This document shows, piece after piece, positions 13,557 to 62,473 of a stretch of DNA of 64,000 nucleotides (positions are counted from its first letter, which is position 1; each line of letters begins with the position of its first letter). Position numbers and translations under genes: made by a program. The DNA comes from Bugula neritina (taxonomy: Eukaryota > Animalia > Bryozoa). Below the pieces are notes generated by a model, which was given only the letters and a program-made list of their open reading frames with translations, was not told the origin of the DNA and ran no database searches. The stretch lies in contig OZ037771.1 in assembly GCA_964035545.1 (NCBI GenBank), forward strand, positions 7,039,190 to 7,103,189, written 5' to 3'.

Positions 13557-19011
<5,455 letters not shown>

Positions 19012-31939: not shown

Positions 31940-32040
31940 TTCAAGATAATGCTTTTAGCTTGCCTTGTTATTATTAATGTCAATAGTAATGTATAGATGA
32001 AAGCAAGGGGTGTAATGACAATGAGCGCACGCAGAAAGTT

Positions 32041-32051
32041 GGAATTTCCCC
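32041..32051 (-). promoter_or_regulatory. NF-kB consensus site upstream of the IAP first (non-coding) exon
   Basis: GGAATTTCCC(C) reads GGGAAATTCC on the minus strand, a perfect GGGRNWYYCC match. A strong donor AA|GTAAGT follows at 32167 and an acceptor at 32549. Confidence 0.55.
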
Positions 32052-32699
32052 AAACCTTTTAACATAGTCATTAGCCCTTCTTATTGTTGCTACGTTTCAT
32101 TATTCGTTTAGTTGCCCGCTCATTTCCAAGCTGTTTAGTATTCCACTGCACGTTTATCAGTCTCAAGTAAGTCACTTTTAGCTTAATAAAACTCTTTTCC
32201 TTTTAACTAGCTCTACAAAAGACTGCATCAGTTGTTTTTAAATCTTATTGGTAAGCAGTTTAGTGCAAGTTTGTAATTTAACACTGTAAACTAAGAAGTA
32301 GCTGTTAGTAATGCTATAATTTGTATTAGTGATAACTTACTTGTCACAACTTCAGAATGTTGTAGAATTTAACTTGGATGTGTCCAGATAAGTAATTTGC
32401 TATCACAGCAATATTGCTTCAAACTATTTTTTATCAAAAATTGGTGTTCCTGAAATGCTGCACTGTGAAATCCAATTCTTGCTCACTGATCACAACAACC
32501 TATACCATATTGAGTTTGAAAGGGTTAATTAATTCTGTTTTTTTTTCAGGTTTATACCAGAACCTTTAATAACACGGATTATCAGTAACGCTCTCTGAAT
32601 CAATGCTTATCAGACTGCCAGGTGATTTAAACTGTAATACAGTCTAACAAAGTGGCTGGGTCAATAATTAATATAGAGCAGCAAAGTTGTTGCAGGCGA

Positions 32700-35600
32700 A
32701 TGACTGATGTTCATAGAAATGATCAATGCCAGCTAAATTTCGGACTTCGAGCAAACAGTAACATTTGCCCTTTTAAGGTTAAACTCAAAAACATTCCTTC
32801 AAATATAATATGTTTAATTATTAAGTTGGTAATAAAATCTATAGATCTAGCGACTTCTCTAAGCCAACACGTAAGAAGTAGCAACATTTCTTATAACATT
32901 GCAATTAGTGTTGAGATAACTGACATCCAACTAGACATCTATATATGTATTAGTGTAATTGAGAAACCTTCTGAGTGTTATCGCAACTCCAAACCACTAC
33001 CTGTAATTGTAAAAATGAATGAAAGCTTAGAAGAGTTTGCATCTTCACCTGTTTCTAAAGGAACTCCGTGTACAAGTCCTCAAATAGTTGAGACTCAACC
33101 TGCAATTACTACGACATTTAACACTAGTGATTATTTTGACTCTGATGTAAGGTCATATTTAGTGAAACAAAATAAAAATGATTTACAAACTGATGAGGTA
33201 CATCAACTCGAGTCCTACAGGCAACTATTTGCTCCTTTAGTAACATCCGCTCATGTTTTAAGCAAAGCAGCAGATGTTAAAAAAGTTGAGAAGGAAGAAG
33301 ATAGTAAACGTATACTTCCCCTCGACGTTCAGCAGATTCTGGATGCTGGTCTGGTGACTGTAACCAGAATAGAGCAAGTCTACTTTGCTTCCAGTGCTAC
33401 ACAAATATCTTTTTTAAAAAATAATTTCACCAGAGAATCTCAGCGCCTTTTGACTTATTCTAACTTTAAAAGCAGTTGTATGTCAGCTCATTCGCTAGCA
33501 TTGGAGGGGTTTATACACGTCCCGGACTTGGGTAAAGATGCCGTAGCCTGTGCCTGGTGTCATCTTAAGTTATGTAACTTTCTTGAGCCCGTGAATGTCA
33601 GGGCTCTTCATAGAGCATACAGTGAAGACGTGTGTCAGTTTATACAACTTAGAAAGTTGGAAAATGTTTCGGATATCTCTGACAGCCATGTGATCACCCC
33701 CTTCCAACATGGTAAGTGTACAGATGGTTGCATTTAGCTTTTATATCAGGAAGGAATTATAATTTTTTCCAGATTTTTTTCTCAAACTGATGTTTATAGC
33801 ATGACTCTAGACCCTCAAATATTCCATTTAACACCCTTTAATTAGCATTATTATGTTTTTAAACATACTTGCAATATTTTCTAATAATGTATCATGGGTA
33901 CTTTATTCTACTAACACACAATACTAGCTGATGAATCTAATAACCTTTATGAAACAGCATTATTACATAACTGCAGCTTAGGTGCTGTGAAATGTTATGG
34001 TATATATGTATATATATGGTATACTAGTTATGATATATTGCTGTAAGTAAGCCTAGGGCCACACTGTGCGTATTTTCGCATGCGAAAATTGAAATCACAA
34101 GTAGCAAAGGTGTCCACTGTGCCCGTTGAGAAAACGTTCGCACTTGTCGCTCTGCATTTTCAACGCAAGTGCGAATCGTCTCTGTCGTCGTCACCTAATT
34201 GGCTGGTAGTTATTAAGCGAGCCCAATTTCTTTATTTTAGTGCTATATTTCAGTAAATTTGAGTTTTATTGAAAGCGAGTGCGATTTAAAAATGAAAGCT
34301 TTATTTATCGCGCATCACTGAAGCTACAGTGGACGCCTTTGCTACTTGTGGTTTCAATTTTCGCATGCGAAAATACGCACCGTGTGGCCCTAGGCTAAGG
34401 GGAAGGAAGTCATATTGTTATTACACCTCACTGATTTTGCAATTAAGTTATTATGGAAACCACATTAAACGTATAGACTGATGATTTTGTTATTAGTTTA
34501 AGTCTTATTACCTAAATATGTCTTGCTTACTTTTAACATAGCATAATGTGTTTTATATAGCATAATAATTTGTAATACATATAACACTATAATATATATT
34601 ATATAGCATACTCTAATAAATATTGCATTAATATACTAACAACATGCATATATTAGTTGTTACAGTATTAATTTAATGATTTTCATGCAAAATATAGTTG
34701 TAGAACTTAATTCATTTGGCAAGAAAAAATTGCACAGTCATCATGAAAAACATTCTTTACACAAATCTTCAGAAGCTTCTTCACCAAATGCAGACTCTGG
34801 GATCTTCATGGAGAATGATAGCATGCCGTTTTCAAGCTCGTCATCTCAAGATTCACCCCATGTTTCTTCCTTATCTTCAATACAAGAACGCAGTGACGGT
34901 GGGTACTGTTCCCTCAATAACCTAACTTCTGAAGTCAGCTCTTCTTTGGTAAGTTCAAAGAGGTTAGAAAATGCTAAACAAAAGCCCACAACTCAGTTAG
35001 GTGCTGCATCAAGAAACCAGATGCAGAGCGTTACTGGTGGTAAACTCAAGAAAAAACTTACAAATATGGTTCTTAGTGAACCCAATACAAAGATGTCTGG
35101 TGATGATTCGGAGGTTTCTGAGATGGAGACATCCAATAAAGTTCTCACCCTTGCAACTACTTCCCCCTCTAAATCAGGAGCTGCTGGACCTCTAGACAAA
35201 ACCCAGACGATGGATTTGGTTTCTTTCAAAGTCAGATATGTTCAGCATTGTCAACCCAGGTGAGTGTCACTTTGTTTATAAGTTCTTAGTAACTTAGCAG
35301 ATAGTATGAAAAATGACATTGTTCTTGTGGTGTACTAATGAAAATAGAGCATCCGCTAAAATTAGGCTTGCATTTCAAAATGATATGCAATATTTTTGTA
35401 TGCTAGAATATGCTACTTTTTTATTTATTATAGGACTTTACTTTTTTGCTTGACTTGCTTAGAAATTACTTAATACAGCGTGAATTTTGGTGTCACGGAG
35501 TGTGAGAGTGTGCATGAAAAAAATGGCTCAATCACAAACACTATACCCAGTGACTCCAAACTCGGTGCTGCATCTAACGATCTCATATGTGCTTACATGT

Positions 35601-38600
35601 TATTATAACTGCATATTATAATATATTAGAGTGTAAATTGTTGTGGGCAATCAGTTGGTTTTTAAAATATGACTGAGAGTGAATTTTTTCTGATATTTTG
35701 ACATGCATGACCTGTTCTGCTTCTGTGTTAAATTTCAGCCAATTTCTTAGCAATTAAACACCTCCACAAAGTTTATGAGATCTGCGTTAAAGATGAAATT
35801 CCTGCTTTAGATTAGGATGAATAAATCAAAACCATAAAACCTTTTGAAAGTGCATTTTAAAAAGTTTCAAAGTTTGTAAGTTATTAACCTGAAGCAGATT
35901 ATGTTCACAGCTTATACTGATCCAACTAGTGCAGATTTCTCTAAATTCTGTACACAATACTAACAGTTAGCTTGTTTTCCAGCATGAAAGAAAAGACAGA
36001 ATGGAACAAAATTCAACTGGAGGCTTGTAGTGACAGCCAATCTATGAACTGGGAAGTTAATCGACTAAGTACATTTTTGAATAAAGGTTGGAAGATCAAA
36101 ACAGCAGAAAAGTTTGCTGCAGCTGGATTTTTTATAGCCAGTTCAGGTAAATCATTCACTTTTATTGTTTATTATGTATCATGACCATTACAATATTTTT
36201 TTTAATTTATAAAACTCAGCTACTGATGGCTTATCGTCACTCACTTATATAAACACAAGTGTATAGAGATTTTGCTTGCTCGATAGTTATTTGTTGTTGA
36301 TTCAAAGTAATCAAAATCGCTTTTCTTAATATTAAAAGAATAAAATGAAATGTTACTGCGTTCATTACATCGGTGTACTATAAGTATATTTAGCTCTAGT
36401 AGCACAATGTGATGTTGATTTAGCATGTTTCAGTTTTAATTTATATATTTAATTTATATCTTTTTTTTTCTGGAGTAAGATTTAGGGGCTGGTATAAGGT
36501 TCTTTTCAGAGTTGTGATACCCACAACTAGCTCCAAACGCAAATAATAGACTTGCATTTTCATGCACTGTGCATTGTCAATTGAAAAATTTGGTACTCGA
36601 ATAATATGTAATCGATTAGATAAAAGCTTTAAATTAGTTTGAATGCTTTCACTTTGATAATTTTGTATTGGAACTATCACCAATGCTATTTCTGATTAGG
36701 GACTTTTGACATTTTACAACTGTTTGAACAGATATCACATGTGCCTTCTGTAACCAGAAGCTCCGCATTGGTAATGGAGAGAGAGACAGCTGTTCTCCAA
36801 CACAACTTCATTTTAAGACTTCTCCATCCTGCATGTTTGTTCAAGGTATACTGCGTTACATATATGTCATATTTATATATATATATATATGCTTCTGTTA
36901 CATTATTTGCATTAGTAGAATTCTTACTTCTTGCATGCAATACACACTATGTACTTTTGAGAGATGTGCAATTTCTTGCAAATGAACTTTTGTAAAGTAT
37001 TTGAAGTCTAAGGCTTATACAACCTATATATAAATTTACTTATGGTTATCAGGATTCTTTTTTACTTATTTTTCTTGGCTAAGTTAAGACATCTTTCTGG
37101 TTTCTCTATCCCTCCCGCCTTTTTATCTCCTCAACAAACTAACTCTGGGATTCATGTGATTATTAAACAAACTTCTTTACTGCTTCCTCATCTGTTAGTT
37201 CTTATAGTATTTTTAAAATATCAACTATTTCAGCTTCTAATATTAACTTGTATAAAATCATCAAAACCAAACTAAGTTATGGGAACATCGTAGTAGCATA
37301 TATGATTGGTTTGGTCTGAAACTCCTTCTGTATAGGTCAAGTGTTTCGATTGGTGTAATGAATAATTAAATTCATTTAATTGGCTAGCTGGCTGTTCTTC
37401 TGCATGGGTGGTCTAATCACCAGTAGATTGGATTCCTGGTAAATTAATTCTTATTTTCTTTATTGTAAAACTTTTGCCTAACATATCACTATAGTGCATG
37501 CTTGTTTTCTATTACTATTGTTTTAGACAGGTTACTAGAGAGAATTCTGGTTCTTCTTAGAAATATCAGTTTTTTTTTCTTTTAGGGATGAAGTTACCTA
37601 ACAACAAAACCAACATACCACGATTGTTTGACAGTCATGTCTGGCAGAATGACCTAGACTTTAAAAAACCAGCTGAACCAATTGTTCCATCGACTAGGCT
37701 GGATGGTTTGGGAATCCAGACAACACTTATTGCTAATCCAGCTATGGGTGTAATAGAGAGAAGACGGGACACATTCCTTACCTTCCCCAATGGCCATCCA
37801 AAAGATCCCAGTGAACTGTCTGAAGCTGGCTATTATTATGAAGGTAGAGTATCTTTCTTTTAATGCATCATGTGACTTTTTGAAGTGTTCAGTTTTCTAT
37901 ATATGCATGTACTATTTTTTCACTCTGCACATATAGCCTATTGCTATAGTATTATTACTAAATTTAGAGATGGTGAGTTTTCGGTAGGTAACAAGAAATT
38001 TAAGGCACCGAAGTTGCTCCACAGACTTGATATTGTTTGCTTTAATGTTGAAAATTTTAAAAAAAATCCTTTAGTTATTTAGTTAACCTATAGCTTTATA
38101 TTATATTTCCATGGTAAATTTAGCACCCATTCTCATTGCAAGAACTGCTATGATTAATTGCTTTAGAATTGTGTCCAACAGGTAAAGGACGGTCTGTTAC
38201 CTGTTTTGCCTGTGCTGTCGTCTCCGATAACTGGACTTTAAACGAAAATGTCTGGATGAGACATGCCCGAAGCTCTAAAACCTGTCCATTCGTGTTAATG
38301 AACAGAGGGGTGGAGTTTATCTGTGCAGCCATAGACGAACTTGGTTCATACAGTGAGCCAAGGGAAGAGAACAGGTTGACGGTATGTATGGCTTACAGAT
38401 CATAGTTATAGCTACAGTGGGCGTCTAGCTGTTGTCTTAATTTTAATTCTGCAATATTATGAATTTTCCATGATATGCAAACTCTATGCACTGCAAAATT
38501 AAGTGGCTGTGCTTCAGATTTATATTTTATGGTTATATTTTATAAAATAACTAAAAGTTTCATCTTTCAGCTCTTTTATTTGACTGCACTGCAAATACAT

Positions 38601-41509
38601 CATGCATTTTTAGTTTATGTAGGACAGACCATTTTCATCTTTCATTTTTATCTTCTTTCCACTACTATTTAACTTGAGTCAGCTTTTTATAATTTATGTT
38701 TTCTTGCAGTTGCGGGTTGCTCCTTTAGTTTAAAAATGATATCTTACTAAAACCCCAGTCGAATATGAGGTTTTTTTTTTAATTGCGCTAAATTATTTAA
38801 TGCTTAATGAGAAAATTGGTAATTTTGTTTAGTCTTAACAAATTCAAATAAAAATGCTCAAACATTACTACTTAAAGCATCATTACATGTTACAGCAAGT
38901 ATCCAACAGGATGTTGCGGCCACGCCTAGATTCGATCGTCGTGCAGCAAGCATTGGATTTGGGATACCATCGAAGTTTTGTCAGAGCCGCAGTTATTAAT
39001 AGATTGAAAGTGAGTTGCATTATGTCTGTTGTTTGTTGCCCATTTGTTTGTAGAGTTGTGAGTTTTAATCAACTAGAGCTTGATTTAATAAACATAATAC
39101 GAAGTATAGAGTGTACGCCAATTAAGTATTTTCAGATATAAATATTTGTTATTTTGTGATTAACATGTAAAATGATTACAATGAGGAACGGTTTTGGTTC
39201 GCATGGCATAAATAGGTTAAATAAACGCAACTATAATTTATCGCAGATTTTCAAAAATTCTCTAGCCATGTATTGACTTGCGTTTCAATTTCTATAAAAA
39301 CTTTACTAATCAATTATTAGTCACTTTAACAGACCAGTCATTCACTTTGGCTACAGTAAGATTGATAGAAAGTAGAGAAGATATATATATTGCTTAGTAG
39401 AATTTTCATTTTAACTTCTAATAATTTTTATTATATTTTCATTGAGTAAGAAGAAAGACATTTTAATGACTTTGCCTAATTTTTGCAGATTTTATTGAAT
39501 ATAATTTTGAGCAATTAGAATCTTGTTCAATCATAAATTCATGAGCTATTATTATAATTAATTTATTCTTAGAAATTAGCCCCAGATTACACAAGATTAG
39601 CTGATCTGGTCAAAGATGTTATGGAATTGACTCCACCCGACCCCAAAAGAATAGTAGAAGCTAAGGAATATTTGCTACCAGATTTATTAGCTGAACCCAA
39701 TTCAGATGAGAAAACAGACTCACATGAAGACAATACACCTGTGCCTGTACCACATGCAACTGAATTGGAGCAAACTGATAGCAAAGACACACCAGATATC
39801 AAAGGTGACATTTACAGTAGCCTGAAAAAGCAGTCAGCTAGCTCATACTCGTTAATTCCAATTATCGTGTCATTGTGGCTAAAGCATTTTTTGGTAAAAA
39901 TTTTTAACTCCAAACACTAAAAGAATCTCAGCTACAGGCTAATGAATTATGTCAAGGTCAAAGTAACTCAGTCAATTGAGTTAATCTCAAAAGTAAAAGT
40001 AGGACACGGTTTGGATATGATCTCCTTAGTGTCTACTATATTATTCTAATAATAGATGCTATTTTGTGGTCATATTAAATATAATACTGAATTGGCATGC
40101 GTCTGTCAAAGGTTGACAGTGCATGGTATTTTTAAAATTGATGTTTCAGGAGTCTCATAATGAGCTTCTCAATATTGTTATTTGTCACCCAGTATAACAT
40201 CTTTGGTCATATATATTAAAGTCTGTAAAATAAAAATTGTCCTTATAATAAGTTACAAGAATTATAAAACTTTGTTTGTACACCAAATCACTGCAAAGTG
40301 TTTCTGAATTAATGCTTAGCATGTAAAACATATCAGTTAAGCTAATGTTGAACAATTTTTAACTTTGAAAATAAATACGAATTGACAACTAATTTGTTTT
40401 TATTGTTAATTTATGTAGAAACCGATTCAGCCACTTCTGGTGAACTTGATTTAGATGGTCTAACAGAGAAGGCCTACACTTTACAGTTGATTTCTCAATT
40501 GACGTGTAAAGTGTGTCTCTCAGATCTGGTTGCCATCATATTTCTTCCATGTGGTCATTGTGGTAAGAACCAGCTTTCTTACACTTCCTGTTTTTGTGTA
40601 TGTATACCGGTAGCACTCTAATTATGTGGAAGTAACCAAAGTAAAGGCCTGGCCACACAATCGTCAAATTCACACAAAAGACGTGTGAATAGTTTTCCAC
40701 ACGTAATAAATAGTCCATGAATGGGTTTTGCACGAGATAAAAACAGCAGAAGATTGTCAGTCACAGAAACTGGTAGAACTGAAATAATAACTATTGATAA
40801 AATTCTATTGGCCAATCAAGTGGTGCTTATTGTCAAATGCGCTTTGTTTGTTCATCGTCTTAAGTGGATGCACCCAGCAAACACGAATTTATATGAATTC
40901 TCTTAAATTTGATTGTACATAAGTAACTAGTATATAGATTCCTAGCTAGTTATAAGACCAAAATGTAGTTTACAAAGTAATGAGGAGTTTGAGCTCCTCC
41001 TTAGTTGAAGGCAACATTATTGTTGCTATACTAATAACTTTGTTTTTTAACCTGTTTAAGCAAAGTTGTATCTTCCCTAGCTTAATATAGTCATTGCTGT
41101 ATTCCCAATAAAACAAAGCAATAAAGTTTTTACTACACACCATCATGGAATTTCACAAATAAAATTTCACACATGTTTTGTAACCGAGCAGTTAGGGTTA
41201 GTGCTATCTTTGAGATTAACATGTCAACCAGACTGTCTCCACTGGTTGATACGGTGGTTGTATTGGAGTCAGAGTGATTATTGGGGTCTTTCTTTGAGGC
41301 CCCTGTTTGCGAAAAATATTTATTGTATCCTGGGCTAAATTTGCAGGAACCATTCAAATCTTATAGCTTGATGTTATATGTATATTATATCCTGATAGTT
41401 TATGCTCGTCTTTGTAGTGTGCTGTACAAACTGCTCACCTTCCATGTCTGAATGCCCGATCTGTAGAGAAGACATTCGTGGCACAATACGAGCCAAATTC
41501 CCACCTTAA
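32700..41509 (+). CDS. BIRC: Inhibitor of apoptosis (BIRC2/3/XIAP/DIAP2-like): three BIRs, UBA, C-terminal RING; no CARD seen; ~963 aa
   Basis: Exons 32700-33711, 34698-35259, 35983-36146, 36732-36845, 37586-37843, 38182-38381, 38896-39009, 39573-39804, 40419-40562 and 41418-41509 sum to 2892 nt in frame. BIR Zn motifs CAWC..H..C, CAFC..H..C and CFAC..H..C; UBA-like VVQQALDLGY; RING CKVC..FLPCGHCVCCTNC..CPICR. The start could alternatively be the ATG at 33015. Confidence 0.93.
34051..34395. mobile_element. PIF/Harbinger (Tourist-like) MITE with ~70-bp TIRs in an IAP intron
   Basis: GCCTAGGGCCACACTGTGCGTATTTTCGCATGCGAAAATTGAAA.. is mirrored at the right end. TAA flanks both sides. Confidence 0.88.
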
Positions 41510-41566
41510 TGAATGCTAGAGAGAAATTGCTATATAAGCTAAAAGCATATACATTAAAGATTGATC

Positions 41567-41760
41567 AACCACGGTCTAGGTGTGAGATTGCTTAGCATAG
41601 CAAACTCGGAGTCATATGTTTAAACCTCAGTAAAATCCATTGATGATGATGTTAGGAAAAGCATTCATCATAATTGCTCATGTCCCACATATAAATAAGT
41701 CCTTAGCTGGATTTAAGGGTGGGGGGAAAGACTATAGACTAAACTATAAACATGAGTTCA
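41567..41760 (+). mobile_element. Degenerate copy of the tRNA-derived SINE in the IAP 3' UTR
   Basis: Shares GGTCTAGG, GATGTTAGGAAAAGCATTC, CATAATTGCTC and the ACTATAAAC..TGAGTT tail with the 23203-23433 element. Confidence 0.6.
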
Positions 41761-42853
41761 TATAAACTAAAAAGTTTAATAATTTGAACAATAATAGTTG
41801 ATTATTTTATGTTTTCTTTGCATTATTCTCTTGCTTGCATATTATACAATCATACGATAGATTTGTGTGTGTGCTATATCCTTATCCATGTTAATTACTG
41901 GTTTGTGTTGAATATGTTCACATAGTTCTATAATAATAAAACTTAGCCAGTACAGACTGATTCTAGCTCTTGATTTTGTACTTCACGTACATGTGGTATG
42001 ATGATTAGAAAGAATGATGATAATATATAATCTGAAACAAAAAATTCAATGTATACTTTATATTAACTGTAAGAGCATGTCACATGTTAAGCGTCATACC
42101 AATTAATAATACAATTGGTGGTCAAGTGTTGGATATGCCTTTCTAATTCAGTTTAAACGTAAAACTGTTCTGTAATTGGCTTAATAAATTATAACAACTT
42201 GTGTGGTAATTTTGTTGCATTGTTTACTGTCATAAATTCTGAGTGTACAGGTACCTAAAGACTTTGCGGTTTTCTCCCAATGATTGTACAAGAATGTTCA
42301 CGAATATTCTAAACTGATGAAATAGATCGTCATTGTTCATTAGGTTATTGTTTGCATTAATTATGTTACCTACTGCCAGCAATGTAAACAAGGTGTTGCC
42401 GAATAACCATTGAAGTTCCAATGTTTTGTTGTGTTTTGGTTACTGGAATGCTTGAGAATGTTCTAGAGTTTTTCTATAATTTACTATAATAATACTGAGG
42501 CAGTTGTGCTTACAAGACAGTTCGTTTTCATAAGTTGGTCTGCGTATAATATCTTGCTGGAGAAATAAAGTATACTTATATTCACAACTCTATTTACTCT
42601 CAATTGGATTAGCAAGCTGTATGCTACTTGTCTATACACTTCTGACTATACCAGACTTTTCAAACTCGTCACACTGCTACTGTAGTTTTGGAACATTTTC
42701 AAATTTTCATTGAAAGCAGTTTATATACAGACTATGGTTATCAGGTTCTGTGGAAAGAAACAAAAAAAAACTATACAAGTGTTGAATCATATCACTGTAT
42801 ACATGACTTCAGTTGACAGTATACCAACGATAAACTTTACGAGGAAATAAATT

Positions 42854-42930
42854 GGGAAAAGTGATTTCCAGGGAAATACCCAAGATGAGAGGGTTTTTCC
42901 AAAGGTAGCTGGATAATCCGGTAAATCCCA
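42854..42930. promoter_or_regulatory. Cluster of kB-like sites upstream of the putative non-coding first exon of receptor paralogue 1
   Basis: AGTGATTTCC, GGGAAATACCC, GGGTTTTTCC, GGATAATCC and GGTAAATCCC lie within ~80 bp. Donor CC|GTAAGT at 43130. Confidence 0.5.
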
Positions 42931-44061
42931 TTTAGTAACGGTAACAAAGACATTCTTTAATTATATAGTCATTTGTAACCAGCCTTTGTGTGTGACACAC
43001 GCATATAATCAATTAGCAGTATCTAATTGATCAAGCCTGTTAGAGTCTTGTATTCACCACTGCCGGTGCACCAACTGTTACTCATCAACATATTTCTCAG
43101 CATAGAAACATCCTGTGCTGGTGAAAACCGTAAGTTAACTATCACTTATATTTCGTTTCATTGATACAACAGCTGTGCTTAGTTCAGTACCCAACTGAAC
43201 TAAATTCCACGGCTTGCATAGGTTTATAGTTTTGTAATTGGCATTCTACAAATAAAGAATAATATTCATAAATATTGCAGCTAGCAAAGGATTGATTGTG
43301 AAGATAGCCACGAGATAATACTATAAATATTACAAATGCACTATGTAGTACTCCCTTTGTATCTCAACCAGAGGTCCCTAATCCTTAATTTGCGACGTAG
43401 TGATCGGTTTACTAGATTTAACTCTATTTTGCCTCTATTTACACCACGAACCACAAAAGGAAGTTCAAACACTTCTCGTGACCTATAGAGTTTTGCAGTC
43501 AAATGGATTCGTGAGATATAGAGAGAGAGCACCGTCTTTGTCTAAAGATAATCACTATATACATGTAACGTGATATAAAACTTAAATTACATGCTTTGTA
43601 GCAACTTATAACATATTTATATAGTATACTAATTACAACTGATAAAAATTGTGCAATTCATAAATGTTTGTGAGAGCTAGCATAACTAAATCTGCTCTAC
43701 TGGTTATAGGTACTAGGTAGTAACTACAAAAGACCTAATTAGCTTTGTCAGGCTTTGAGGCTAATTTAATTGTAACAGTATTTTGGTTATGAAGTTCCCA
43801 TACTACCTACTTTTCAAACTGATCAGCCTTCACCATAAAACATGTTCTTAGTTGTTTAATCTATCTCATTCAGTTAGTCTAAGATATACTCACTTTGTTG
43901 TAATGTTTACAAATTTCCATTAAGTGCAAATCAAATTATGAATTTCTTCTTGGAATATCATAGTTTTGCTAGGTGGTATAGACTAGTAATGAAATATTAC
44001 TTAAACTTTTGCAGTGCATTATAAGAAAAAAAGTTATGACCAAATAAATATGCAATTTTTA

Positions 44062-44133
44062 TGGAAATTCCTTTTTCCTTAGCGATAGTACAATACCAAA
44101 TTCATTGGAAATTCCCAAGGGCCTGGTTTTTCC
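44062..44133. promoter_or_regulatory. Second kB site cluster (intronic enhancer or alternative promoter of paralogue 1)
   Basis: TGGAAATTCC (44062), GGAAATTCCC (44107; perfect GGGAATTTCC on the minus strand) and TGGTTTTTCC (44124). Confidence 0.5.
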
Positions 44134-46198
44134 AACATACTTAAGAATTTGCCTTTTCTAGCCACTCCCAGTTATAGCTATCTCTAATAACAACTTGATG
44201 TAAACCATTAATAGTTCCATTTATAAAGTTGAGTTTGACTATCGCTTTAAGATTTTAGCTGTTTATAATTGAGCAGTTTTATAAAATGACCAATTTCTAT
44301 TGTTACATAATTATTAACAAATTACTAGCTCATAAGCTTCAATGAAGTTATTGAGTTGGTGAAAATAGTGAATAATCAACTATATGATTACATGTTATGC
44401 AATTTTCCCTTGCGAATTTTACAAAATAGCTAGTTTTATTCAAATCTAGCTGAGATTTGAAGTCTCCTTAATGTTGTAATGTAATGTATAGGTGCCATAT
44501 AGGCACCCTTTCACTTTGCTATCGTAGATTTTGTATAAAAAGTTCTTGCATAAGCTGTCCTAAATGTCTGCATGGCTTTCTTTTAGATTTAAAGCATAAA
44601 GCCTTTAGCAGTATTAAGATAGGGAATCAGTATGGAGGTTGTGCTTCTAGCAGCATTTCTTTTGAATGAGCTACAGCTCAGCTTACAGGACCCTATTCCA
44701 GCTGTGTTAAGGTTGGTAATTGAAAATAGTGCTTGCTTTTTCTGTTTAAACCCAACTTTTAAATTCACATCTTTATAATAAAAGCACAAAACGCCTATAA
44801 AAAATATTAGAATAATGAAGTCACATGCATGTTTTCAATGTAAACATGTATATTTACTATTCGACTTAGATAATAAATTAGCATTTTGGACTACAAAATA
44901 AAAAGCTACTTTGTTTTTTAAAACGCAGGAGCATAGCTAAATAAATTGAAATGTTTTGACACTTAATGTGGTTTTGTTGGAATAATCATTCATAATATTC
45001 TACGATATAAATGCAAGAAAAAAAGCTAGGCTCAACAAAAAGTAATGGGTTACTCAAGAAGTGTTACAAAATTCCCACAATGTCATAATAAATTTTTCCT
45101 ATGATTTTGGTAATTTCCAAATAATTTCCATCGTTCTTCAGAGTGAGTTATTAAGAACTAAAAATCCGTAAAGCATTATACGTTTAGTACGTGTCAAACA
45201 TTGACAACCCTATACGTTGCATATATAATTTTACAGTTACATATTCTGGGTAAGATATTGCAAATGTGGCTTCAGTTATCAGCTAATAAAAAGTACAAGT
45301 ATGCTTAAGAGCATTAGTAGATATGAAATATTTGCGTATAAGTATTCTTTGGATAACGCTATGGAACAAGGTTATAAAAATAGCGAACCTGAAAAAAGTT
45401 GAAGTTATAGTAAAAACCGGGCAAAAGATAGTTTTGGACAACTATAGTACAAGAGGTGATATTATAGTAAAGTTATAGCCACTCACTGGCCCAAGTAGTT
45501 ACACTAACATATAATTAAATCATATCTATAGTTAAAAGGCATTTGTGTGACCTATAGCTATTAAGTACTTCAACTGTCTAAAAATTATTTTAATAATTTC
45601 ACAAGAAATTAATCACAAATAAATGTTATACAGGGGTGTAAGCATTTGACATTTACAAGAGAAAACAATTCTGTAAACCCCAGGTAACTTCATCTTTTGT
45701 ATTTAACCTGTCAAAGTGTGTTGCTAATACTTGGCATTATTACTGCTTATCATTGCTAGAAAATTCTAAAACTTGTTTTAATGTAATTTTTTTTACTACT
45801 AAATGAGTGCATTTGTTATTAACTAATTATTATCACATTGAATTAATGCAGTAAAAATGCTCAAGTCAGCATAGCTGATTGGTTGAAATTGATACATGTG
45901 GTTTAGAATATTATAAAGATACAAGGCAGCCTACCCCAAGTAGTGCTAGTTGACTATTCAGAGCACTGACTTAGCATTCTGCATTTTAGTCCATTAGATT
46001 AATCTTTGTAAAGCTTTTAGATTATGTAGCTAGCACAGGGGGGGGACAAATCCTTATTTGGCTTATAGACTCTTGCTAGCTATTCTCCCGGAAAGGGAAA
46101 ATTTAAAATGTCCTTGTTTTGCTATAACTTTTGTCAAACCAAGAAATTAAATTTCCCAAAAGCAAAGCTGGGTAATGCTTGTAATGGTGGCATCTTGC

Positions 46199-49100
46199 AT
46201 GTTTAAAGCTTTCTTAGCTTTTTTTTGTATATATAAAGTTTGGTCTTCTACATGTGGAGAGCTTTGCACAAAACAGGTAAGCATGACAGGTTATGGCTAT
46301 GCTCAACAAAGATACATTATTTTCAACAAAATCTTTCACCATATATAGTTGAAGCAGTGAGCAAAAAGTCTTTTTATAAAATGTTTTAACAAATTTATTT
46401 TTAGATAATGGTGCTGTGAATATTGCCAAGTTCATGCAAAGACTGCTTTTAAAAGTGTACAATTTATTATTACTATTATTCATTAAAAATTTCAACGTAT
46501 TTTAGGTCATATACATAAATAATAACAGCAGCCAAATACTATAATGAGCAAAAGGTATCTTCGTGTAAATTGCCTTTTAATGACTAGTACCTATAGTGTT
46601 ATAGTTCAATTAGTTAGCAATATTGTTACAAGTAATTTACCAAAAGTTGTGAAAACTTTAATCCCTTCAAAGCAGTCTAGCTACAAATCTCTAGAGCTTT
46701 GCTTTTGATGTAAAACATTTGCTTAAATACATTTACTAAATTAACTTACAAAAACTAATGGTTTGGTCAATTATTGTATATTGCAATTGATTATACTATT
46801 ATAGATTGCAAAAAAAGCTACATGAAATGTAACATTCATACTCTCTTTTAGTGAAAAGCCATTAAAATTTTCGTTGACTTTGCAATGAATGCTGAAAAAC
46901 TATTTTTTTACCACTTACTATTATCATATTTTTGGACAACATTGCTTTTGTATAAATGCTACGGTGTAATAGATTATAGAGCTTGTTTGCTATAATAGAC
47001 TTTTGTTTTGTGAAAATTGTAATTGGTGATATATTTCTGAATAATATATTAGTAAAACTAAAGTAATTTATTGCAACTAATTCATAAAAACAAGTAAAGT
47101 TAATGATTTGCAGTTCAGTCATGAAGATATCTTGATAACTAGTATTTGACCTTTATAACTATAGTTATAAAGGTCAAATACTTCAACTGTTAAACCAAAA
47201 TATGTAAATATCCAAAGCTTTTATATAAGCCTTTAATGTGACCTTTTACATGTTTTAACTAACATGCAAAATTCACCAAAACTAAACTATGCGTTTCTCA
47301 CTTATAGTCTATAGTTACGTTACTGCATGTAGTTGAATCTTTGCAGGTGCAGTGGGAATCTATCAGACTTTACATATTATGATTGCCAACGACCCTCAAC
47401 TCCTGGTCACAATACAGCTTGTTTCGGACGAGATGGAATCGGGTTTGGGACATGCTTTTCTATCTGTGATGGAGTCTCAGTTGGTTCTTACGAGGGCCTC
47501 AAAAGTTACAAAAGTTGTGAAGCGAGCTGCAAATGTAAGCAAAACTTATAAGAAATATTATCAGAGTGATAATAATTATTCTTGCCAGAAGTGTGGGCCA
47601 TAAATATCTGAAATGACTTTATGAATATATTTAAAACTAGAAACAGTTATTTATAAAGTCTGTTGAATTAGCTAAAGTTGATGAAATATAACATTTTTTT
47701 AATTTTATTAAATTGGGTAATATATAAATATATTGTTATTCTTATTCAGCTTTTATGAATAAAGAATGCACCGAGGTTGGCGTCACAACTTCACCCCAGA
47801 GCCCGGAGATAGCAAATGCTTCATCAACCCTGGAGTTTATAGAATCCACTGCTTCCTCTCTAACAACAACCTCATTATCTGCCATAACAACAGCTCTTCC
47901 AGATGTTAATTATGATAGCATTACTGCATATTCCATCTGCATTCCAATCGCAGCGATTTTATTAGTCTGTCTTTTGGCTGAAGTTATACAGCGTTGCAGA
48001 AAACAGACTTCTCCGAGTGCTGCTTTCCTTGCTTGCATAAAAAAGATATACCAAAAAGCTAAATCTACTGACAGCAACAAAGGTACAAGCTGTTGATTAT
48101 TAATTATTTAATATGAATTTTTGAAAACGTTGTTGATGTCTTGCATAAAAATATATTCTAGTCAAATTAAGTATTGCTGACAGTTCTCTCATTAGATCTC
48201 TCCCACCCCTGTTTTGGTGATGATGTGATAGTGATGCTTGTATTTTTTTACTCATGAAACCGTTTGCTAGAATCAAAATACTATAGAGTCAATAGATTTT
48301 TGCTAAAAAACTTTTATGTCAGCCTACAGCCGCTTAGTCTCTAGCTAAATTTGCACCAGAATGTAGGCTATGATGTAGAGAAGTGAGGCTAAATGTTTAG
48401 AGTTTACAGAATAACGAGTCGTTGATAATCAATCAATGCTAGAAGTAGATGAACATGATAAATATTAATATTTATTATACTCTAAAACATGCACACATAT
48501 ATAGTATTAATATTGTTATATTTGATTCCTTAGGAAATTTTTTGTACAACCTTGTTTGATTCTTTATATGTAGAAGGCGGAGAACAAGTTATACCACTTG
48601 CCGATGTGAATAAACCCAAGCAAGAGTCAGGTAAAAAGTAATGTATATCAGAAATCAGCAACTAGTTTTTAATTTTAGTGTTTTGTGTGAATTATGCTCA
48701 GTGCAATGACAAACTGTGCTGCAAACTAAAAAAATGAACTTTAATAGTTTATATTATAGCTGTGAGCTAAGTGAATAATAATTTGGTTTTTAGTATTTTC
48801 TAAAACATTATGAAAAATAAAATTATGATGCCACACACTACACAGGCCACAATATATTTTGCTTCATTTGCTCCATTTTAAATGTCTGGTTTTTTTATAG
48901 TAACTAAATTTATTTGTACTTTGGGCAGGCTTCTTTAACAACAAGCGCTCCGTGCGTGATCTGACTTGATTTTTGTTGTTGCTAAGCATTTCTTTTACTC
49001 ACTAATATTATATTTTATTACTTCTAAATAACATTTTTTTGCTAAATTATGGAAACTAATTATCTCTACAGATGAATGCGGTTACAGTTTACTACAACTC

Positions 49101-49337
49101 CAAAATATTACCATAAACTGCATAATATATTATATAGCTTGTAATTGAATCTTGTCATTATTATCTATACTATTAGTATATAGATGTGAATTTATGCTCT
49201 ACAATAGAAATAGCTGGTCAGTTAAATACCATTCAACTGTTTTAGGTGAGGCAGCAACTACTGAGACTAGTGAGGCAGCAGACGTTCCTCATTGCTTAGA
49301 TAACACCATGTCACTAGTGCCAAATGATCAAACTTAA
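46199..49337 (+). CDS. Type-I membrane protein, paralogue 1: signal peptide, 8-Cys domain, S/T stalk, TM helix, tail with PKQES; putative TNFR-like receptor, ~248 aa
   Basis: Exons 46199-46276 (needs a 1-nt deletion in the T8 run at 46219-46226), 47347-47534, 47750-48082, 48574-48630 and 49246-49337; phases are consistent. TM segment AYSICIPIAAILLVCLLAEVI. Exon structure is colinear with paralogue 2. Confidence 0.75.
47141..47182. repeat. Perfect 42-bp spacerless palindrome, intronic
   Basis: AGTATTTGACCTTTATAACTATAGTTATAAAGGTCAAATACT is self-complementary. Confidence 0.95.
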
Positions 49338-50431
49338 GTGTAAAACTATCACATAAGTAATGCAGGTTAAATTGTTTATCTCTATTTTAAATTACTGCCA
49401 AAATAATTTACTTACTTACATCTTTTAATTTTCATCAAACAATATATCTTTCTATTGAACTATGACAGTTGAAATTTATGTTAACCTTTATTTAATGTTT
49501 TATATAGCAATTGCCCCTTTTGTTGAAGCAAATTGCTTCAAGCATTGCGATTAAATTTTTCAGCTTCCATGTTATTTTAATGTTTCAGTAATAGTCATGT
49601 TATATTATATTTTATAATTTGACTGCCCCTTATACTGAGTTTACATACTTACAGATGTATAAACTTTTTGTCTACTTTTCTACATATGCCACGTATAATA
49701 GTATTAGTCATGTGCATTACAATTACAATTACTCAGAATACATGAGTAAACAGCTAAATTTACTAAACTAAATTTGAAACCTAAATAATTTAGTGTAGAA
49801 TGCAGTAGTATAATTATATTATCTAGTAAAATAATGTTGGCTGTACAACCAACTATGATAAGTAATTAGTTGCGATTGAATAACAATTCTAAGGCACTTG
49901 ACGTCACGTTCTACATATCTCTCACCTACTAAATAAATAAAGAATGAAACTTTTAGTGCTTCCTTATTGCTAGTTATGCAAACATAACATTGATTGGTGT
50001 AAATAATTATGAGTGCCAATTCTTTTCTGAGTTTGAGTAAAACAAATTAAGCTTTTTTTCCTCGTCCATTGATTTATTGTTTACAAATTTACATATAGAA
50101 ACTACTAGTTTTAGCAGCATTACTAGTACAGGAGTAACTAAAGGTAGAATTTTAATTGGTTTGCTAATAATTGAAATGACACAAACGGGCAAAATAACAA
50201 TAGGTGCCGATAATGAACATTTAAAACAAATTCTTAGCATATATAATGCTAATGTGGACTAAGCTTGATTAAAGCTTGCTCAAAAGCTTGGGATTGAAAT
50301 AGCATTACAATTGAAACACTTCATAACAAATAATATCAGCCGGATCTAAATTATAGGTATATTGGGAAACTGCAGTAAGCATGGCGTGATTAGTGAATTT
50401 ATAATGATATATTGTATTTTCCTTGCCAAGC

Positions 50432-50510
50432 TGGAAAATCCAAGCAGTTAATATAAAATACGTTGATTGGATGATTCCATTGAGGTAATTGGAATGTTTG
50501 GGGAAATCCC
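50432..50510 (+). promoter_or_regulatory. NF-kB sites upstream of the putative non-coding first exon of paralogue 2
   Basis: Perfect GGGAAATCCC at 50501-50510 plus TGGAAAATCC at 50432. Donor AG|GTAAGC at 50573; next acceptor at 51637. Confidence 0.55.
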
Positions 50511-51659
50511 AGATTAGGTTGTTGGAAAACGCAATCATAAGGAAACTATTCATTCTCGTCCCAACTTTCAAGGTAAGCTGTTGTATATTAAATCTGTATA
50601 AATGTTATGAAATATATTTTCATTCGTTATAGGAAGAACAATAGAGTTTAATTATCACTGACTCATAAACATCTAGGAGGTATATATTTTTCATTTTTAG
50701 TACTACACTGGGGGATTCAAGATAATCCTTTCGTTAGTTTTTTATTGTAAACATTCACACGACTTGGAACTGTTTTGGTTCATTAGCTTTAGGTTTTGTG
50801 ATAATTAAGTTTGTCATTATGCCATAATATATACTTGTACATGTTGCTAGTATAACCTATCAATGTAAGGTGCATAATAAGCCCATGTGGTTTCTAACTT
50901 AAACACTTACTTACTCAAAGTCTGGTGACTCAACCACTTGTCAGTCTATGGTTAGTGTTAGCATGTATCTAATGCATTGGCAGAAAAAGAGCTACTCATG
51001 TGACTTAGTCAATTGTTTTAACTCTATTGTACTTCCAACTATACTAGCAAACAAAAACATTATATTTACATTTAGTTAGTGCTACTGAGAATACACCATT
51101 GATCGAATTCCAATTAATCACAGCGTTTCCGTCCCTTCCCATTATGGATGCTCCTATGCATGGATGAATTTGTGGTTTGCCTTTACTAGTGGTTGTGGCT
51201 TTATTTGAAGCAACTGTTTCCAAACATTAAATGAAAAATTCATTAGTATACATATATAATATATTGCAGTTACAGCTAGCTAGCACACAATAAGTAGGTT
51301 ATAATACACCATGTGTTTTGGTTCCTATAGCCACCATATAGAACAATCACTTTAGTATTTATGTATATATTACCTCCCCCCAACTATTCAAAACCAAAAG
51401 CTGCTAAAAGCAGCTCTATTTCTACGTATTACTGTTATGTTGTTTTCATATCTATAACTGCAATATTTTATTGCCAATCTCAAAATAACCCATAAACAGT
51501 TTTAGAAAGCAACTCCAAATTACAAAGTAGCAACACAATTTTAAATTGCTAAAAGCAATCTATTTTAGATCGAAAATCTCTGATTAGTTATTCTATATGA
51601 CTATTTAGATATAAAAATTTATTTAATTTTTTTTTAGAGAATATGAAAAGGGAGCAGCT

Positions 51660-54600
51660 ATGAGATATTACTTTGCTTCATTGCTCAATAATTTGCTGTA
51701 CTTTGTGCTCATTGCTAGACCTTGCTTACTCTCTACTCTCCCATTGGCTGTTTTAAGGTGAGCTAGATTGTTGTTGCATGCAAGTATATATAATATGTCT
51801 AAATAATTGTATAATTGCAAAAATTTTCATACCTATTAGGCAATAGTTTGTTGTACAAGCCAAAAAGAGTTCTATCACATAACTCTTTGTTAGAATATAA
51901 ACAAGCATAAACAATATTAGGTTAGAAATTTTTACTAACTATATAACATGTACTAACTTAATTATAGAGCAGTTTAGAAGACAAGTATTTGCTCGTTATT
52001 TTTATAAATGCAATTCCATAATTTCTTAATTATCATTTGTTGTGTTTTTGAAGGTAAATGGCAAAAAATTAATTCCAAACTGATAACTTTTCTAGTAATT
52101 ATAACAAGTATTAAATTGAAACAACAGTCACAAGTTATATTGATTAACACATTTTGCTGTTTTTTGAAAGAAAATATAGTAATTTTCATATCAGATTAAA
52201 AGTAAAAATAGCTAGCATATTGAAATTTCATAATATTTAATATTTAGCCTTTTTTATGAAAATAATTCTAAATTACCTTAATACTTGCATTGTAGCACAG
52301 TTGTCAAGTTTTTATTTATAGAGAAAATTAAACAATTAGCATGTCTCAACATTTTTATAATGATTTTGAAAACTCATAAGAATATAATTATTTTGCAGTT
52401 GCAAAGGAAGGTTGTCAAATTTTTCGTACAGTGATTGTCAAAGGCCCACAATACCTGGCCATGACGTTGCTTGTTTCTTATACGAAGGGCTTGGATATAG
52501 ACCATGTAGCTCCATATGTGACGGAGTTGAAGTCAAGTCCTATGAAGGAGATAAGAGCTATAGAAACTGTGAAGCACGATGCAAATGTACGTTCGAATCG
52601 TGCATAATATTTAATAAATTAAAGTATAAGTTCCAATTGAGTTTCAGCAAAAGTTTTTTGTCTCCTAAAATAATTCATATTGATTATGAAGCATCATGCG
52701 GCAGTTAACTGAAAAGCACAAAATCACGTTAATTAAAAAGTTTGTAATTAGGTAACTTGGAAAATCCAGAATGATAATGTGCAACATCCAGTGTGTGATT
52801 TGATTAGACAAAATGTTTTAATTTTTACAGTTTGGTGACATGACTTTACAACAAAATAAATTCTGATACGAAATCGCATAAAAGATGTGTGCACATTTGC
52901 ATACGTCACAGTGTGTGTGTAAATTAGCTAAAACTAGCTCCTGTTACGTTATAGTGTTGGTATATTTATGTGTGATATTATAAATTATACTATAATTATA
53001 TTATGTTTGCACAGTGTTTATGACCAGAGAATGCACTGAAGTGCAGCAGCATTCTACTGTTCAAGCTGAAGCAACTGTCTCAGAAGTTACCAGACAAGAA
53101 ACAAGTTTGGAACGTGTGACACCATCTACTGCGGACGAGTACAAACTGGCCAGGAACTCTACAAAAGTTGTATCCTCACGAACAAAAATCAGTCACATTG
53201 CTATCTACCTTGTATTTGGTTTGTTGGGCCTATTTGTGATTATTGTTGTTATTGCTGAAGTCCTGAGAAAAAGAAAAGATCAGGATTCTCGTGTTCGAAG
53301 GCGCTCGCTTTTTGAAAGAATCAAACGGGCAATGTGCAGACTCAGACCTGCAGATATTGTTGAGCTAGGTGAGCGATAAAAAAATTGTTAAGCAATTTAA
53401 AAGCTAGTAAAGCATAAATCACTGAGTTAAAAATGACTTGATACAATTGCAGTAAAATATCCTATGAAATATTGTCACAAAACTTTGCATTGCTATAAAT
53501 AGCTGTCGCTTTTCAATTTTTCATTCATCATTACTTCATTCGATAATATAATTATTTAGTTTAACCTAACATTGAAATATGTTAGGTTTATGTCTTTGAA
53601 TTTAATTTATTTTTGAACTCTCATTAGATACCATGAAACAAGATAATATAAAAAGTTATCTTATTTAATAATTATTCATAGTAATATATTTAAAAAAGCG
53701 CATTTTTATCATCATACAAATCCTAGTGATAGCACTAATGCAACAGAGCCAGCGAAAATGATTTCATATAAAGTACTTTAAAAACTTAGAATATACAATA
53801 TATACAGAAATTTTTACAGCATACTTTATTCAAGAGAGGACAACTTTAATATAAGAGTCCACTCGGCTGTTACCTTTCACAACCATTTCTTTTACTGTGA
53901 TGCACTTTTGCTACTGTAGTATTATATACTACCAAGGTTTGATTATAGCTATTCATATTCTGAGAAATTATTATAGTGATGTTTTTTGTTTTGCATGCAC
54001 AGAGCTTGCTCAAGTAAGACATCCTTTACAAGTATCAGGTATGTATATATAGTTGGTATAATCTACCAGCCTAATGGTAAGAGTAAGATTAAAATGTAGT
54101 AAGATTAAGAAAAATAACAATGCTAAGAATAGTCTAAAAAATACGAAACTTTAAAACAAAACAACAAATAAATTGCTTTGCTTTGCTTTAAATTTCTTTT
54201 AGTGTGATGCACTTTTGATACTATAGTATTATATACTACCAAGGTTTGATTATAGCTATTCATATTCTGAGAAATTATTATAGTGATGTTTTTTGTTTTG
54301 CATGCACAGAGCTTGCTCAAGTAAGACATCCTTTACAAGTTACAGGTATGTATATATAGTTGGTATAATCTACCAGCCTAATGGTAAGAGTAAGATTAAA
54401 ATGTAGTAAGATTAAGAAAACTAACAATGCTAAGAGTAGTCTGAAAAATACGAAACTTTAAAACAAAACAACAAATAAATTGCTTTGATATCATTATTTA
54501 TATTCTTTACAAGTACAATGTAATATTTTAAAACATGTTGAAATATGTATATAGCTATGCTTATAAACTGATTATTGTTATAGAAACTATGCCTACAGCT

Positions 54601-54681
54601 CAAGCCAGTCAAGCGGCTGATGTTCCTTTCATTCCAGATAACATTTTTCATCCAGTAGTGAATGAAGAAATTGGACTGTAA
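51660..54681 (+). CDS. Type-I membrane protein, paralogue 2: signal peptide, 8-Cys domain, stalk, TM helix, tail with PLQVS and PLQVT; putative TNFR-like receptor, ~269 aa
   Basis: Exons 51660-51757, 52399-52586, 53015-53368, 54003-54038, 54310-54345 and 54584-54681 sum to 810 nt in frame. TM segment IAIYLVFGLLGLFVIIVVIAEVL is followed by RKRK. The Cys exon is 188 nt in both paralogues. Confidence 0.8.
53896..54487. repeat. Near-identical 307-bp tandem duplication containing a 36-nt exon
   Basis: 53896-54180 is repeated at 54203-54487 with few differences. Confidence 0.95.
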
Positions 54682-54799
54682 ACTACCCACACCAGCTTTA
54701 TCATTTATTAAGCTGTACATGACTCTCTGTTTCTAATCTTTACAAAAATAACTTTGTTATTTTATGAGTTTCAATACTGCATGCAGAAGCTCATATATG

Positions 54800-55015
54800 G
54801 TATATAGTATAATATAATATAATATAACATATCATGATATAGTATAGTATAATATAATATAGTATAATATAATGTAATATAACATAATATAATATAATAT
54901 AACATGATATAATATAATATGATATAGTATAGTATAATATAATATAATATAATGTAATATAATATAATACAATGTGATAGAGTATAGTATAATATAATAT
55001 AATATAATATATATA
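54800..55015. repeat. (AATAT)n-type pentamer microsatellite between convergent 3' ends
   Basis: Directly visible. It explains the YYII ORFs. Confidence 0.92.
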
Positions 55016-55186
55016 CATGTTTTATATAGTTTTTCACTTTATTTTGTAATAATGCATATCTTTATATCTTAATATTAATATCATATGTAGTTTTAAATTA
55101 TGTGCAGTATATACTACTTATAGTGTTTTTGACTGATTTATATTAATAGATGCATATATGCAATATTACAATAGCAGTATATAATA

Positions 55187-62430: not shown

Positions 62431-62473
62431 CTAACCTAAAAACATTTAAAGATGAGTTTTTTAACTAATAAAG

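Follow-up and report, generated by a model that had tools for sequence, protein, structure and literature searches.

A divergent XIAP-type IAP gene beside two genes of an orphan cysteine-rich receptor family with candidate TRAF-docking microexons in Bugula neritina

Background

Among the inhibitor of apoptosis proteins (IAPs), XIAP and Drosophila DIAP2 combine three BIRs, a segment at the UBA position and a C-terminal RING and have no CARD, and cIAP1 and cIAP2 (BIRC2/3) follow the order BIR-UBA-RING with a CARD between the last two; BIRC3 is a classical NF-kB target. On the receptor side, Drosophila Grindelwald and Wengen are small type-I receptors with one Cys-rich module and TRAF signalling. 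CD40-type TNFRs without a death domain have a type-I topology, a Cys-rich ectodomain arranged as a repeat ladder, and a short tail whose motif is of the Px(Q/E)E or PxQxT type (PMC6125299). For bryozoans, whose immunity is almost unstudied, our literature searches found no description of TNFR, TRAF or IAP signalling. Here, we analyse positions 32041-54681 of a 64,000-nt stretch of Bugula neritina DNA, C7:7039190-7103189 (the window, meaning that whole stretch), which carries an IAP gene and two paralogous genes for Cys-rich membrane proteins, named R1 and R2. A first-pass annotation had described these three genes as a candidate TNFR-like NF-kB-inducible module.

B. neritina is a species complex. 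The closest public DNA is an older draft, GCA_010799875 (GCA_010799875.2), likewise labelled B. neritina (PMC7576161), from which contigs L006 (VXIV02002946.1) and L034 (VXIV02001372.1) were used. These contigs are 96% identical to each other, and each is collinear with the window at about 80% identity; they are probably uncollapsed haplotypes of one IAP-R1 region, differing at the R1 kB-like sites. A Logan contig, L035, aligns with the IAP 5' region at about 84%. All three contigs were handled as a sibling lineage of the B. neritina represented by the window.

The explanation that we favour overall, and regard as moderately probable, is that the locus holds a real XIAP-type IAP and two orphan receptors, which would dock TRAF adaptors and whose genes, perhaps together with the IAP gene, would be under Rel control.

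Gene models of R1 and R2

IAP, R1 and R2 are all real genes of Bugula neritina and evolve under purifying selection. The predicted run of three consecutive genes on the plus strand was confirmed by Pfam matches, intron phases, NCBI models and the ratio of nonsynonymous to synonymous substitution rates (dN/dS) against the sibling lineage, which is 0.02-0.23 for most exons of the IAP gene and, for the Cys exons, 0.19 in R1 and 0.03 in R2. Exon boundaries, especially those of the microexons, are predictions from sequence, and all searches were run exon by exon on unspliced pieces. The protein homologue search in public data, whose length window left out proteins the size of full-length R1 and R2 (about 250 aa) and of the 722-aa IAP model, returned only unspliced open reading frame (ORF) fragments or NCBI models, and exon models for the locus are a practical gain of this work. 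The two receptor genes consist of the following parts, all on the plus strand.

44632-44711, plus strand: R1 exon 1 (predicted), ATG and signal-like peptide, phase-2 donor
47347-47534, plus strand: R1 exon 2, Cys-rich, with seven of the eight cysteines; dN/dS 0.19
47750-48082, plus strand: R1 exon 3, eighth Cys, Ser/Thr stalk, transmembrane segment and basic juxtamembrane residues; orthologous ORF P0005
48574-48630, plus strand: R1 microexon (predicted), 57 nt, phase 1-1, ending in PKQES; conserved in L006
49246-49337, plus strand: R1 terminal exon (predicted) with stop, ADVPxxxDN
51660-51757, plus strand: R2 exon 1 (predicted), ATG and signal-like peptide, phase-2 donor AAG/GTGAGC
52399-52586, plus strand: R2 exon 2, Cys-rich; dN/dS 0.03 against L006
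53015-53368, plus strand: R2 exon 3 (predicted), eighth Cys, stalk, transmembrane segment and basic juxtamembrane residues
53896-54487, plus strand: tandem duplication in the last R2 intron, 307 bp and 285 bp, copies 97.5% identical
54003-54038 (PLQVS) and 54310-54345 (PLQVT), plus strand: R2 microexon copies, 36 nt, phase 1-1, each with a strong acceptor and donor
54584-54681, plus strand: R2 terminal exon (predicted) with stop, ADVPxxxDN

R1 and R2 are tandem paralogues whose genes have the same five parts and the same intron phases (2,1,1,1). Each predicted protein has a signal peptide, an 8-Cys domain, a Ser/Thr-rich stalk, a single transmembrane segment with basic residues behind it, and a tail that is about 78 residues long. 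Their Cys exons are 63% identical in protein sequence, and the remainder has diverged past detection at the DNA level. This common structure and the likeness of the Cys exons agree with the earlier description of two paralogous Cys-rich type-I genes. Models of the sibling lineage match the exon structure at several points: the junction of R1 exons 1 and 2 is found in NCBI protein EB796_019828 (P0001), the L006 NCBI model for the rest of R1 (159 residues) attains its length only with the 57-nt microexon, and an NCBI model on L006 begins at the orthologous R2 ATG.

Two further observations concern these genes. A short upstream ORF of 6 codons (ATG 51643; 51643-51663) overlaps the predicted R2 start codon. 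In L006, R1 ends in an R2-type terminal exon, which is about 85% identical to 54584-54681 and is followed by about 2 kb of DNA resembling the R2 3' region, which replaces the R1 terminal exon of the window (L006:14470-16469 against window 49226-49328 and 53783-56064). This R2-type 3' end could have arisen by gene conversion or by segmental duplication from one paralogue to the other, or the draft could be misjoined here.

An orphan 8-cysteine ectodomain

The Cys module of R1 spans about 70 residues with the spacing C-x11-C-x11-C-x10-C-x3-C-x16-C-x3-C-x7-C. The family to which it belongs has four copies in the genome; the two beyond R1 and R2 lie on C3 and C4 and share the layout, with a Cys domain, an intron at the same point and a transmembrane exon. 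A Pfam search at E<=10 gave no match for R1, R2 and five relatives (seven members), a PDB sequence search of the module gave none, and the ESM Atlas held no usable match for it. When 1.84 billion representatives were searched exhaustively with the family profile, nothing was retrieved beyond the Bugula orthologue and a single homologue from another sample (Logan runs SRR25569789 and SRR25569782). The profile search of the PDB gave one match, which was not significant, the plant vicilin alpha-hairpinin 9Q1L (CX3C...CX3C, E 0.65). An AlphaFold2 model built with seven sequences and covering the Cys exon only (the eighth Cys lies in the next exon) reached a predicted local distance difference test score (pLDDT) of 56.9 and showed a short helix at each of the two CX3C pairs; Foldseek with this low-confidence model found no match in the PDB.

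In a six-frame search of the same kind, used as a positive control, four canonical TNFR_c6 exon matches above the cut-off were found elsewhere in the genome. Alignment of the family profile with these repeats by hhalign gave probabilities of only 0.1% and 1.4%, and the TNFR_c6 (PF00020) repeat by which the TNFR superfamily is recognised was not detected in R1 or R2. The label "TNFR-like" given to the receptors in the first-pass annotation is not supported, since Pfam, the PDB profile search and hhalign were all negative while the true TNFR_c6 repeats of the genome were detected. Judged by its sequence, the R1/R2 module is a new 8-cysteine domain of an orphan family with no recognisable TNFR similarity.

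With CD40-type TNFRs, R1 and R2 share the type-I topology, the Cys-rich ectodomain, and a short tail that lacks a death domain and includes a motif of the Px(Q/E)E or PxQxT type. They differ in having a single module on a mucin-like stalk instead of a repeat ladder, a motif encoded in a separate microexon, and an 8-Cys module without detectable similarity to TNFR_c6. R1 and R2 also recall Grindelwald and Wengen in general build; however, the PDB profile search of the family returned the alpha-hairpinin alone and thus gives no support for a link to a solved TNFR-type chain. With alpha-hairpinins, the module shares the spacing of cysteines 4-7 and the predicted short helices on both CX3C pairs, and the sequence pattern of this CX3C...CX3C half suggests a helical hairpin stapled by disulfides. 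R1 and R2 differ from alpha-hairpinins in being membrane-anchored animal proteins with four further cysteines, and the E value is 0.65. A relationship of R1 and R2 to TMEM154 was considered and rejected, the sole match being sub-threshold and confined to the R2 transmembrane exon.

These results bear on the idea that R1 and R2 belong to the TNFR superfamily and signal via TRAFs to the neighbouring IAP, the three genes forming a co-induced NF-kB cassette held together by selection. We regard this idea as very unlikely. It would account for the type-I topology with a Cys-rich ectodomain, and some single-Cys-repeat TNFRs of insects and vertebrates are very divergent. The absence of TNFR similarity by Pfam, PDB profile and hhalign, in a genome whose true TNFR_c6 repeats are detected, nevertheless counts against it, and the CX3C...CX3C spacing is not known from TNFR repeats. 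A six-frame search of the genome for the TNF ligand (PF00229), which likewise counts against the cassette, gave no match, but its sensitivity is doubtful, and it found none in control genomes either.

A divergent XIAP-type IAP

The IAP gene lies upstream of R1 and is composed of the following parts.

33015-41509, plus strand: IAP gene, candidate ATG at 33015, stop at 41507-41509, predicted splice sites
33015-33711, plus strand: BIR1 exon, Pfam BIR 5.9e-7, phase-1 donor at 33711
inside 34640-35260, plus strand: probable Ser-rich linker exon, from a splice-site and phase scan
35983-36146 plus a piece inside 36728-36845, plus strand: BIR2, Pfam BIR 0.0076 on the second half
37586-37843 plus a piece inside 38154-38381, plus strand: BIR3, Pfam BIR 0.044 and 1.1e-8 on the two halves
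inside 38839-39009 and 39573-39804, plus strand: UBA-like segment, UBA_BIRC2-3 E 0.18 on the first half only
inside 40352-40562 plus 41418-41509, plus strand: RING, zf-C3HC4_3 in two exon halves

The gene had been described as a 3-BIR/UBA/RING IAP and E3 ligase. Pfam searches support the BIRs and the RING, PDB searches support the BIRs, and NCBI models on L006 and L034 carry both domains. The two RING exon halves, which match positions 2-23 (0.013) and 23-48 (3.8e-5) of the 49 positions of zf-C3HC4_3, also uphold its description as an E3-type protein. The UBA is less clear: UBA_BIRC2-3 matches as a sub-threshold half-domain (E 0.18) in an exon that is the most constrained of the gene (dN/dS 0.02), and a PDB sequence search with the exon at the UBA position gave no match. 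The zinc ligands of the BIRs (CX2C...H...C) have canonical spacing in BIR3, one extra residue in BIR1 and three in BIR2. Between BIR1, with its donor at 33711, and BIR2, with its acceptor at 35983, phase arithmetic requires an extra exon, which is probably supplied by the Ser-rich frame at 34640-35260; such a linker is consistent with the 722-residue NCBI model on L006. A search for IAP exon 1 in metagenome contigs found none.

Pfam detected no CARD in any exon frame from 38839 to 40618, where the linker is short and acidic. In PDB searches, BIR1 was closer to XIAP BIR1 (2POP, E 1e-4) than to cIAP1 BIR1 (7QGJ, E 0.0056), and BIR3 matched the BIRs of NAIP and XIAP. As predicted from these exons, the gene encodes a functional but divergent IAP of the XIAP/DIAP2 type that combines three BIRs with a probable UBA and a RING and lacks a CARD; the XIAP/DIAP2 type is preferred to the cIAP type because the UBA is only sub-threshold and a CARD is missing. 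It resembles XIAP and DIAP2 in its three BIRs, the segment at the UBA position, the C-terminal RING and the lack of a CARD. It differs from them in a long N-terminal extension and probably the Ser-rich linker, in a 3-residue insertion between the zinc ligands of BIR2, and in very divergent BIRs, which score 34-37 bits against up to 89 bits for BIRs elsewhere in the genome. With cIAP1 and cIAP2 it shares the order of BIRs, probable UBA and RING, but it has no CARD between the UBA and RING exons and its match to cIAP1 BIR1 is weaker. The proposed analogy with cIAPs, which bind TRAF2 through BIR1, was not upheld: without a CARD and with a BIR1 nearer to that of XIAP, the cIAP-TRAF2 contact cannot simply be carried over to this IAP, and the same two features speak against the cassette.

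A MITE-like element (miniature inverted-repeat transposable element) at 34048-34399, with inverted ends at 34048-34120 and 34325-34399, occupies part of the first IAP intron. In the sibling lineage, a copy of this element sits upstream of R2 instead (L006:17553-17877).

Tail microexons and the TRAF-type motif

P.Q.[ST] motifs had been reported in both receptor tails, and both are present in the predicted exons, as PKQES in R1 and PLQVS/PLQVT in R2. Comparison of the two tails revealed only two short common stretches, the microexon stretch LAxVxxPxQxS and the terminal ADVPxxxDN. The R1 microexon reads ...PLADVNKPKQES, and that of R2 reads LAQVRHPLQVS, with a second copy ending ...QVT. The consensus for binding of TRAF1/2/3/5 comprises a major form, Px(Q/E)E, and a minor form, Px(Q/E)xT (PMC6125299); Px(Q/E)xxD is a further pattern of TRAF-recruiting tails. 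By pattern match, PKQES, with a polar residue after Px(Q/E)E, corresponds to the major form and PLQVT to the minor one. In the comparison of the R1 microexon with L006, 4 of 57 bases differ (dN 0.076, dS 0.083) and PKQES is intact, and most of the flanking intron is a visibly poorer match.

The genome also holds TRAF-MATH genes (29 exon matches), and TRAF recruitment through the microexon stretch is a reasonable proposal from these sequence patterns. R1 and R2 would then be signalling receptors that recruit a TRAF adaptor through the microexon, which is the most likely mechanism because the LAxVxxPxQxS stretch agrees with the consensus for docking of TRAF1/2/3/5. Being symmetric (phase 1-1), the microexon can be skipped without breaking the frame, so that its inclusion or skipping would add or remove a docking site. 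The R2 microexon sits in the recently tandem-duplicated 307-bp unit (97.5% identity), and in R2 the site could accordingly occur twice. Should TRAF recruitment by R1 and R2 be real, the pair would represent an independently evolved TRAF/NF-kB input with a new ectodomain and would clearly exemplify a signalling motif encoded by a microexon that splicing can leave out.

Motifs of the TRAF-consensus type in homologous microexons would also be expected of the TNFR cassette discussed above. A different view attributes the whole pattern to coincidence: PxQxS would serve as a sorting, phosphorylation or splicing-enhancer signal, the kB words described below would be due to chance or to another factor, and the IAP would be unrelated to R1 and R2. 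We consider this view possible, though doubtful. The motif is short, with a chance of 3-7% per tail, and the low dS of the microexon fits constraint at the nucleotide level; the positions of P, Q and S are nevertheless kept between paralogues whose tails otherwise have little similarity, which coincidence does not readily explain. Should the motif prove unrelated to TRAFs, the locus would serve as a warning that short motifs (kB, PxQxS) and an abundant gene family easily suggest a "module".

kB sites upstream of the three genes

A perfect kB site near the 5' end of each gene, as stated in the first-pass annotation, was found at 32041, 44107 and 50501. The sites and associated features are given below.

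32041-32050, minus strand: IAP kB site GGGAAATTCC, perfect GGGRNNYYCC, 965 bp upstream of the first plausible ATG
44062-44071, plus strand: second R1 kB-like site TGGAAATTCC, one mismatch; perfect in L034, one mismatch in L006
44107-44116, minus strand: R1 kB site GGGAATTTCC, perfect, 516 bp upstream of the R1 ATG
50461-50571, plus strand: R2 candidate core promoter with 5' non-coding exon; conservation in L006 about 90%
30836-31941, no strand assigned: interspersed repeat upstream of IAP, at least 60 partial copies in the genome at 68-82% identity

In R2, TATAAAA (50461-50467) is followed 40 bp on by the perfect palindromic site GGGAAATCCC at 50501-50510, 1150 bp upstream of the ATG and intact in L006. 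A donor, CAAG/GTAAGC, follows after 50571, 61 bp downstream of the kB site, and a strong acceptor at 51637, before the ATG exon, fits an upstream non-coding exon; from this layout, the kB site probably lies within the transcribed leader. The two R1 sites are 45 bp apart, and the core of the downstream one, GGAAATTCC, is kept in the window, L034 and L006; the site at 44107 is perfect in L034, and a 1-bp deletion leaves it with one mismatch in L006. In IAP, the conserved donor of a candidate 5' non-coding exon, at 32168, follows the kB site after about 118 bp, and the 3' end of the lineage-specific repeat precedes the site by about 100 bp. In L034, a one-mismatch motif, GGGTTTTCCC, is found about 106 bp upstream of the conserved donor, in a part where the alignment is poor. 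The repeat at 30836-31941 is missing from L034 and L035, and many of its genome copies are on C8. The spread of kB sites by one repeat was rejected as an explanation, as the three flanks are dissimilar and the repeat upstream of IAP stops about 100 bp short of its site.

Across the window, seven distinct perfect GGGRNNYYCC sites were found against 1.48 expected from shuffles. The background, measured in 200 kb sampled elsewhere in the genome, was six sites (0.03 per kb), against which three sites in 22.6 kb give a P of about 0.03 and seven in 64 kb a P of about 0.004. In a motif-blind search for 10-mers (<=1 mismatch) common to the three 1.3-kb upstream regions, GGAATTTCCC ranked top among GC-rich words, and two shared GC-rich 10-mers were found against 0.32 expected. 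Rel-homology exons are present in the genome. Taken as sequence words, the kB sites are somewhat commoner than chance and plausibly functional, and their position upstream of IAP, R1 and R2 suggests Rel-dependent transcription, in which the IAP may share Rel regulation with R1 and R2.

The same sites can be read in other ways. Sites upstream of all three genes, with a kB-type word as the top common GC-rich word in a motif-blind search, are in line with the cassette. For coincidence, three sites in 22.6 kb reach a P of only about 0.03 against the real-genome background, and four of the seven kB matches of the window lie outside the upstream regions, one in a reverse-transcriptase ORF and two in a GC-rich stretch at 3-4 kb. 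Chance accounts less well for a perfect site at most 1.2 kb from each ATG, with a nominal probability of about 0.036 per gene, and for the recurrence of kB-like motifs at matching places in the sibling lineage.

Linkage of the genes and competing explanations

In the sibling lineage, IAP, R1 and R2 stand in the same order. Synteny in related genomes had been proposed as a check on the module, and the order was indeed found; it carries little weight, because the sibling lineage is about 80% identical and collinear throughout. Kept order is thus a point for the cassette that is offset by the short evolutionary distance over which synteny was compared, and the other family members are not beside an IAP, with no BIR match within about 0.5 Mb of them.

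BIR exons are numerous in the genome, with at least 55 matches in several clusters, and some would be expected beside unrelated genes, so a chance IAP neighbour is plausible and coincidence gains from it. Large tandem clusters of BIR exons and of TRAF-MATH exons (the 29 matches given above) are found, in two sets, at C5:6.76-6.84, C6:12.49-12.59, C7:0.89-0.91 and 15.22 Mb and at C9:5.07-5.43 and C8:10.03-10.08 Mb; in B. neritina, expansion has affected the IAP family as well as the TRAF family. In our preferred explanation, the adjacency of IAP to R1 and R2 may accordingly be a historical accident in an IAP-rich genome.

Several points weigh against the preferred explanation of TRAF-docking receptors under Rel control. 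For the tails, composition-matched shuffled sequences yield P.Q.[ST] in 6.6% (R1) and 3.0% (R2) of cases, the motif is short, and two paralogues are not independent observations; the low dN of the R1 microexon, about equal to dS, fits splicing-type nucleotide constraint equally, and the sibling-lineage comparison covers the microexon of R1, not that of R2. The microexons and the 5' exons are themselves predictions. For the ectodomain, the fold prediction failed (pLDDT 57), and the true fold may be a very divergent TNFR-like one. Regarding the kB sites, conservation of the R2 site could reflect other constraints because it is probably in the leader and 40 bp past the TATA element, the IAP site is imperfect in the sibling lineage, where the alignment is poor, and at about 80% identity it is not unusual for a degenerate 10-mer to be retained with at most one mismatch. 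For the paralogues on C3 and C4, the upstream 1.4 kb contain no perfect kB site, and the nearest BIR matches are about 0.9 and 0.6 Mb away.

A more ambitious version of the preferred explanation can also be formulated, in which R1 and R2 belong to a bryozoan-specific receptor family with a new 8-Cys ligand-binding module and a splicing-switched TRAF site, doubled in R2, and are Rel-co-regulated with the IAP as a lineage-specific survival/immunity locus. In its entirety, this version seems unlikely to us.

Neighbouring features of the window

Upstream of the three genes, two genes lie on the minus strand, an otopetrin-like gene (3-461, 6.3e-6, just below the cut-off) and a TMEM185A-like gene (17661-17999, 1.6e-11), with no evident link to an IAP/R1/R2 pathway. 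On the other side, a retroelement is represented by a long minus-strand ORF at 60374-62464 (RVT_1, 2.5e-34), which contains the kB match at 61135. Near the start of the window, a long GCT-type microsatellite at 688-1064 reads as poly-Ala-Leu, poly-Ala-Asn or poly-Leu-Met depending on the frame.

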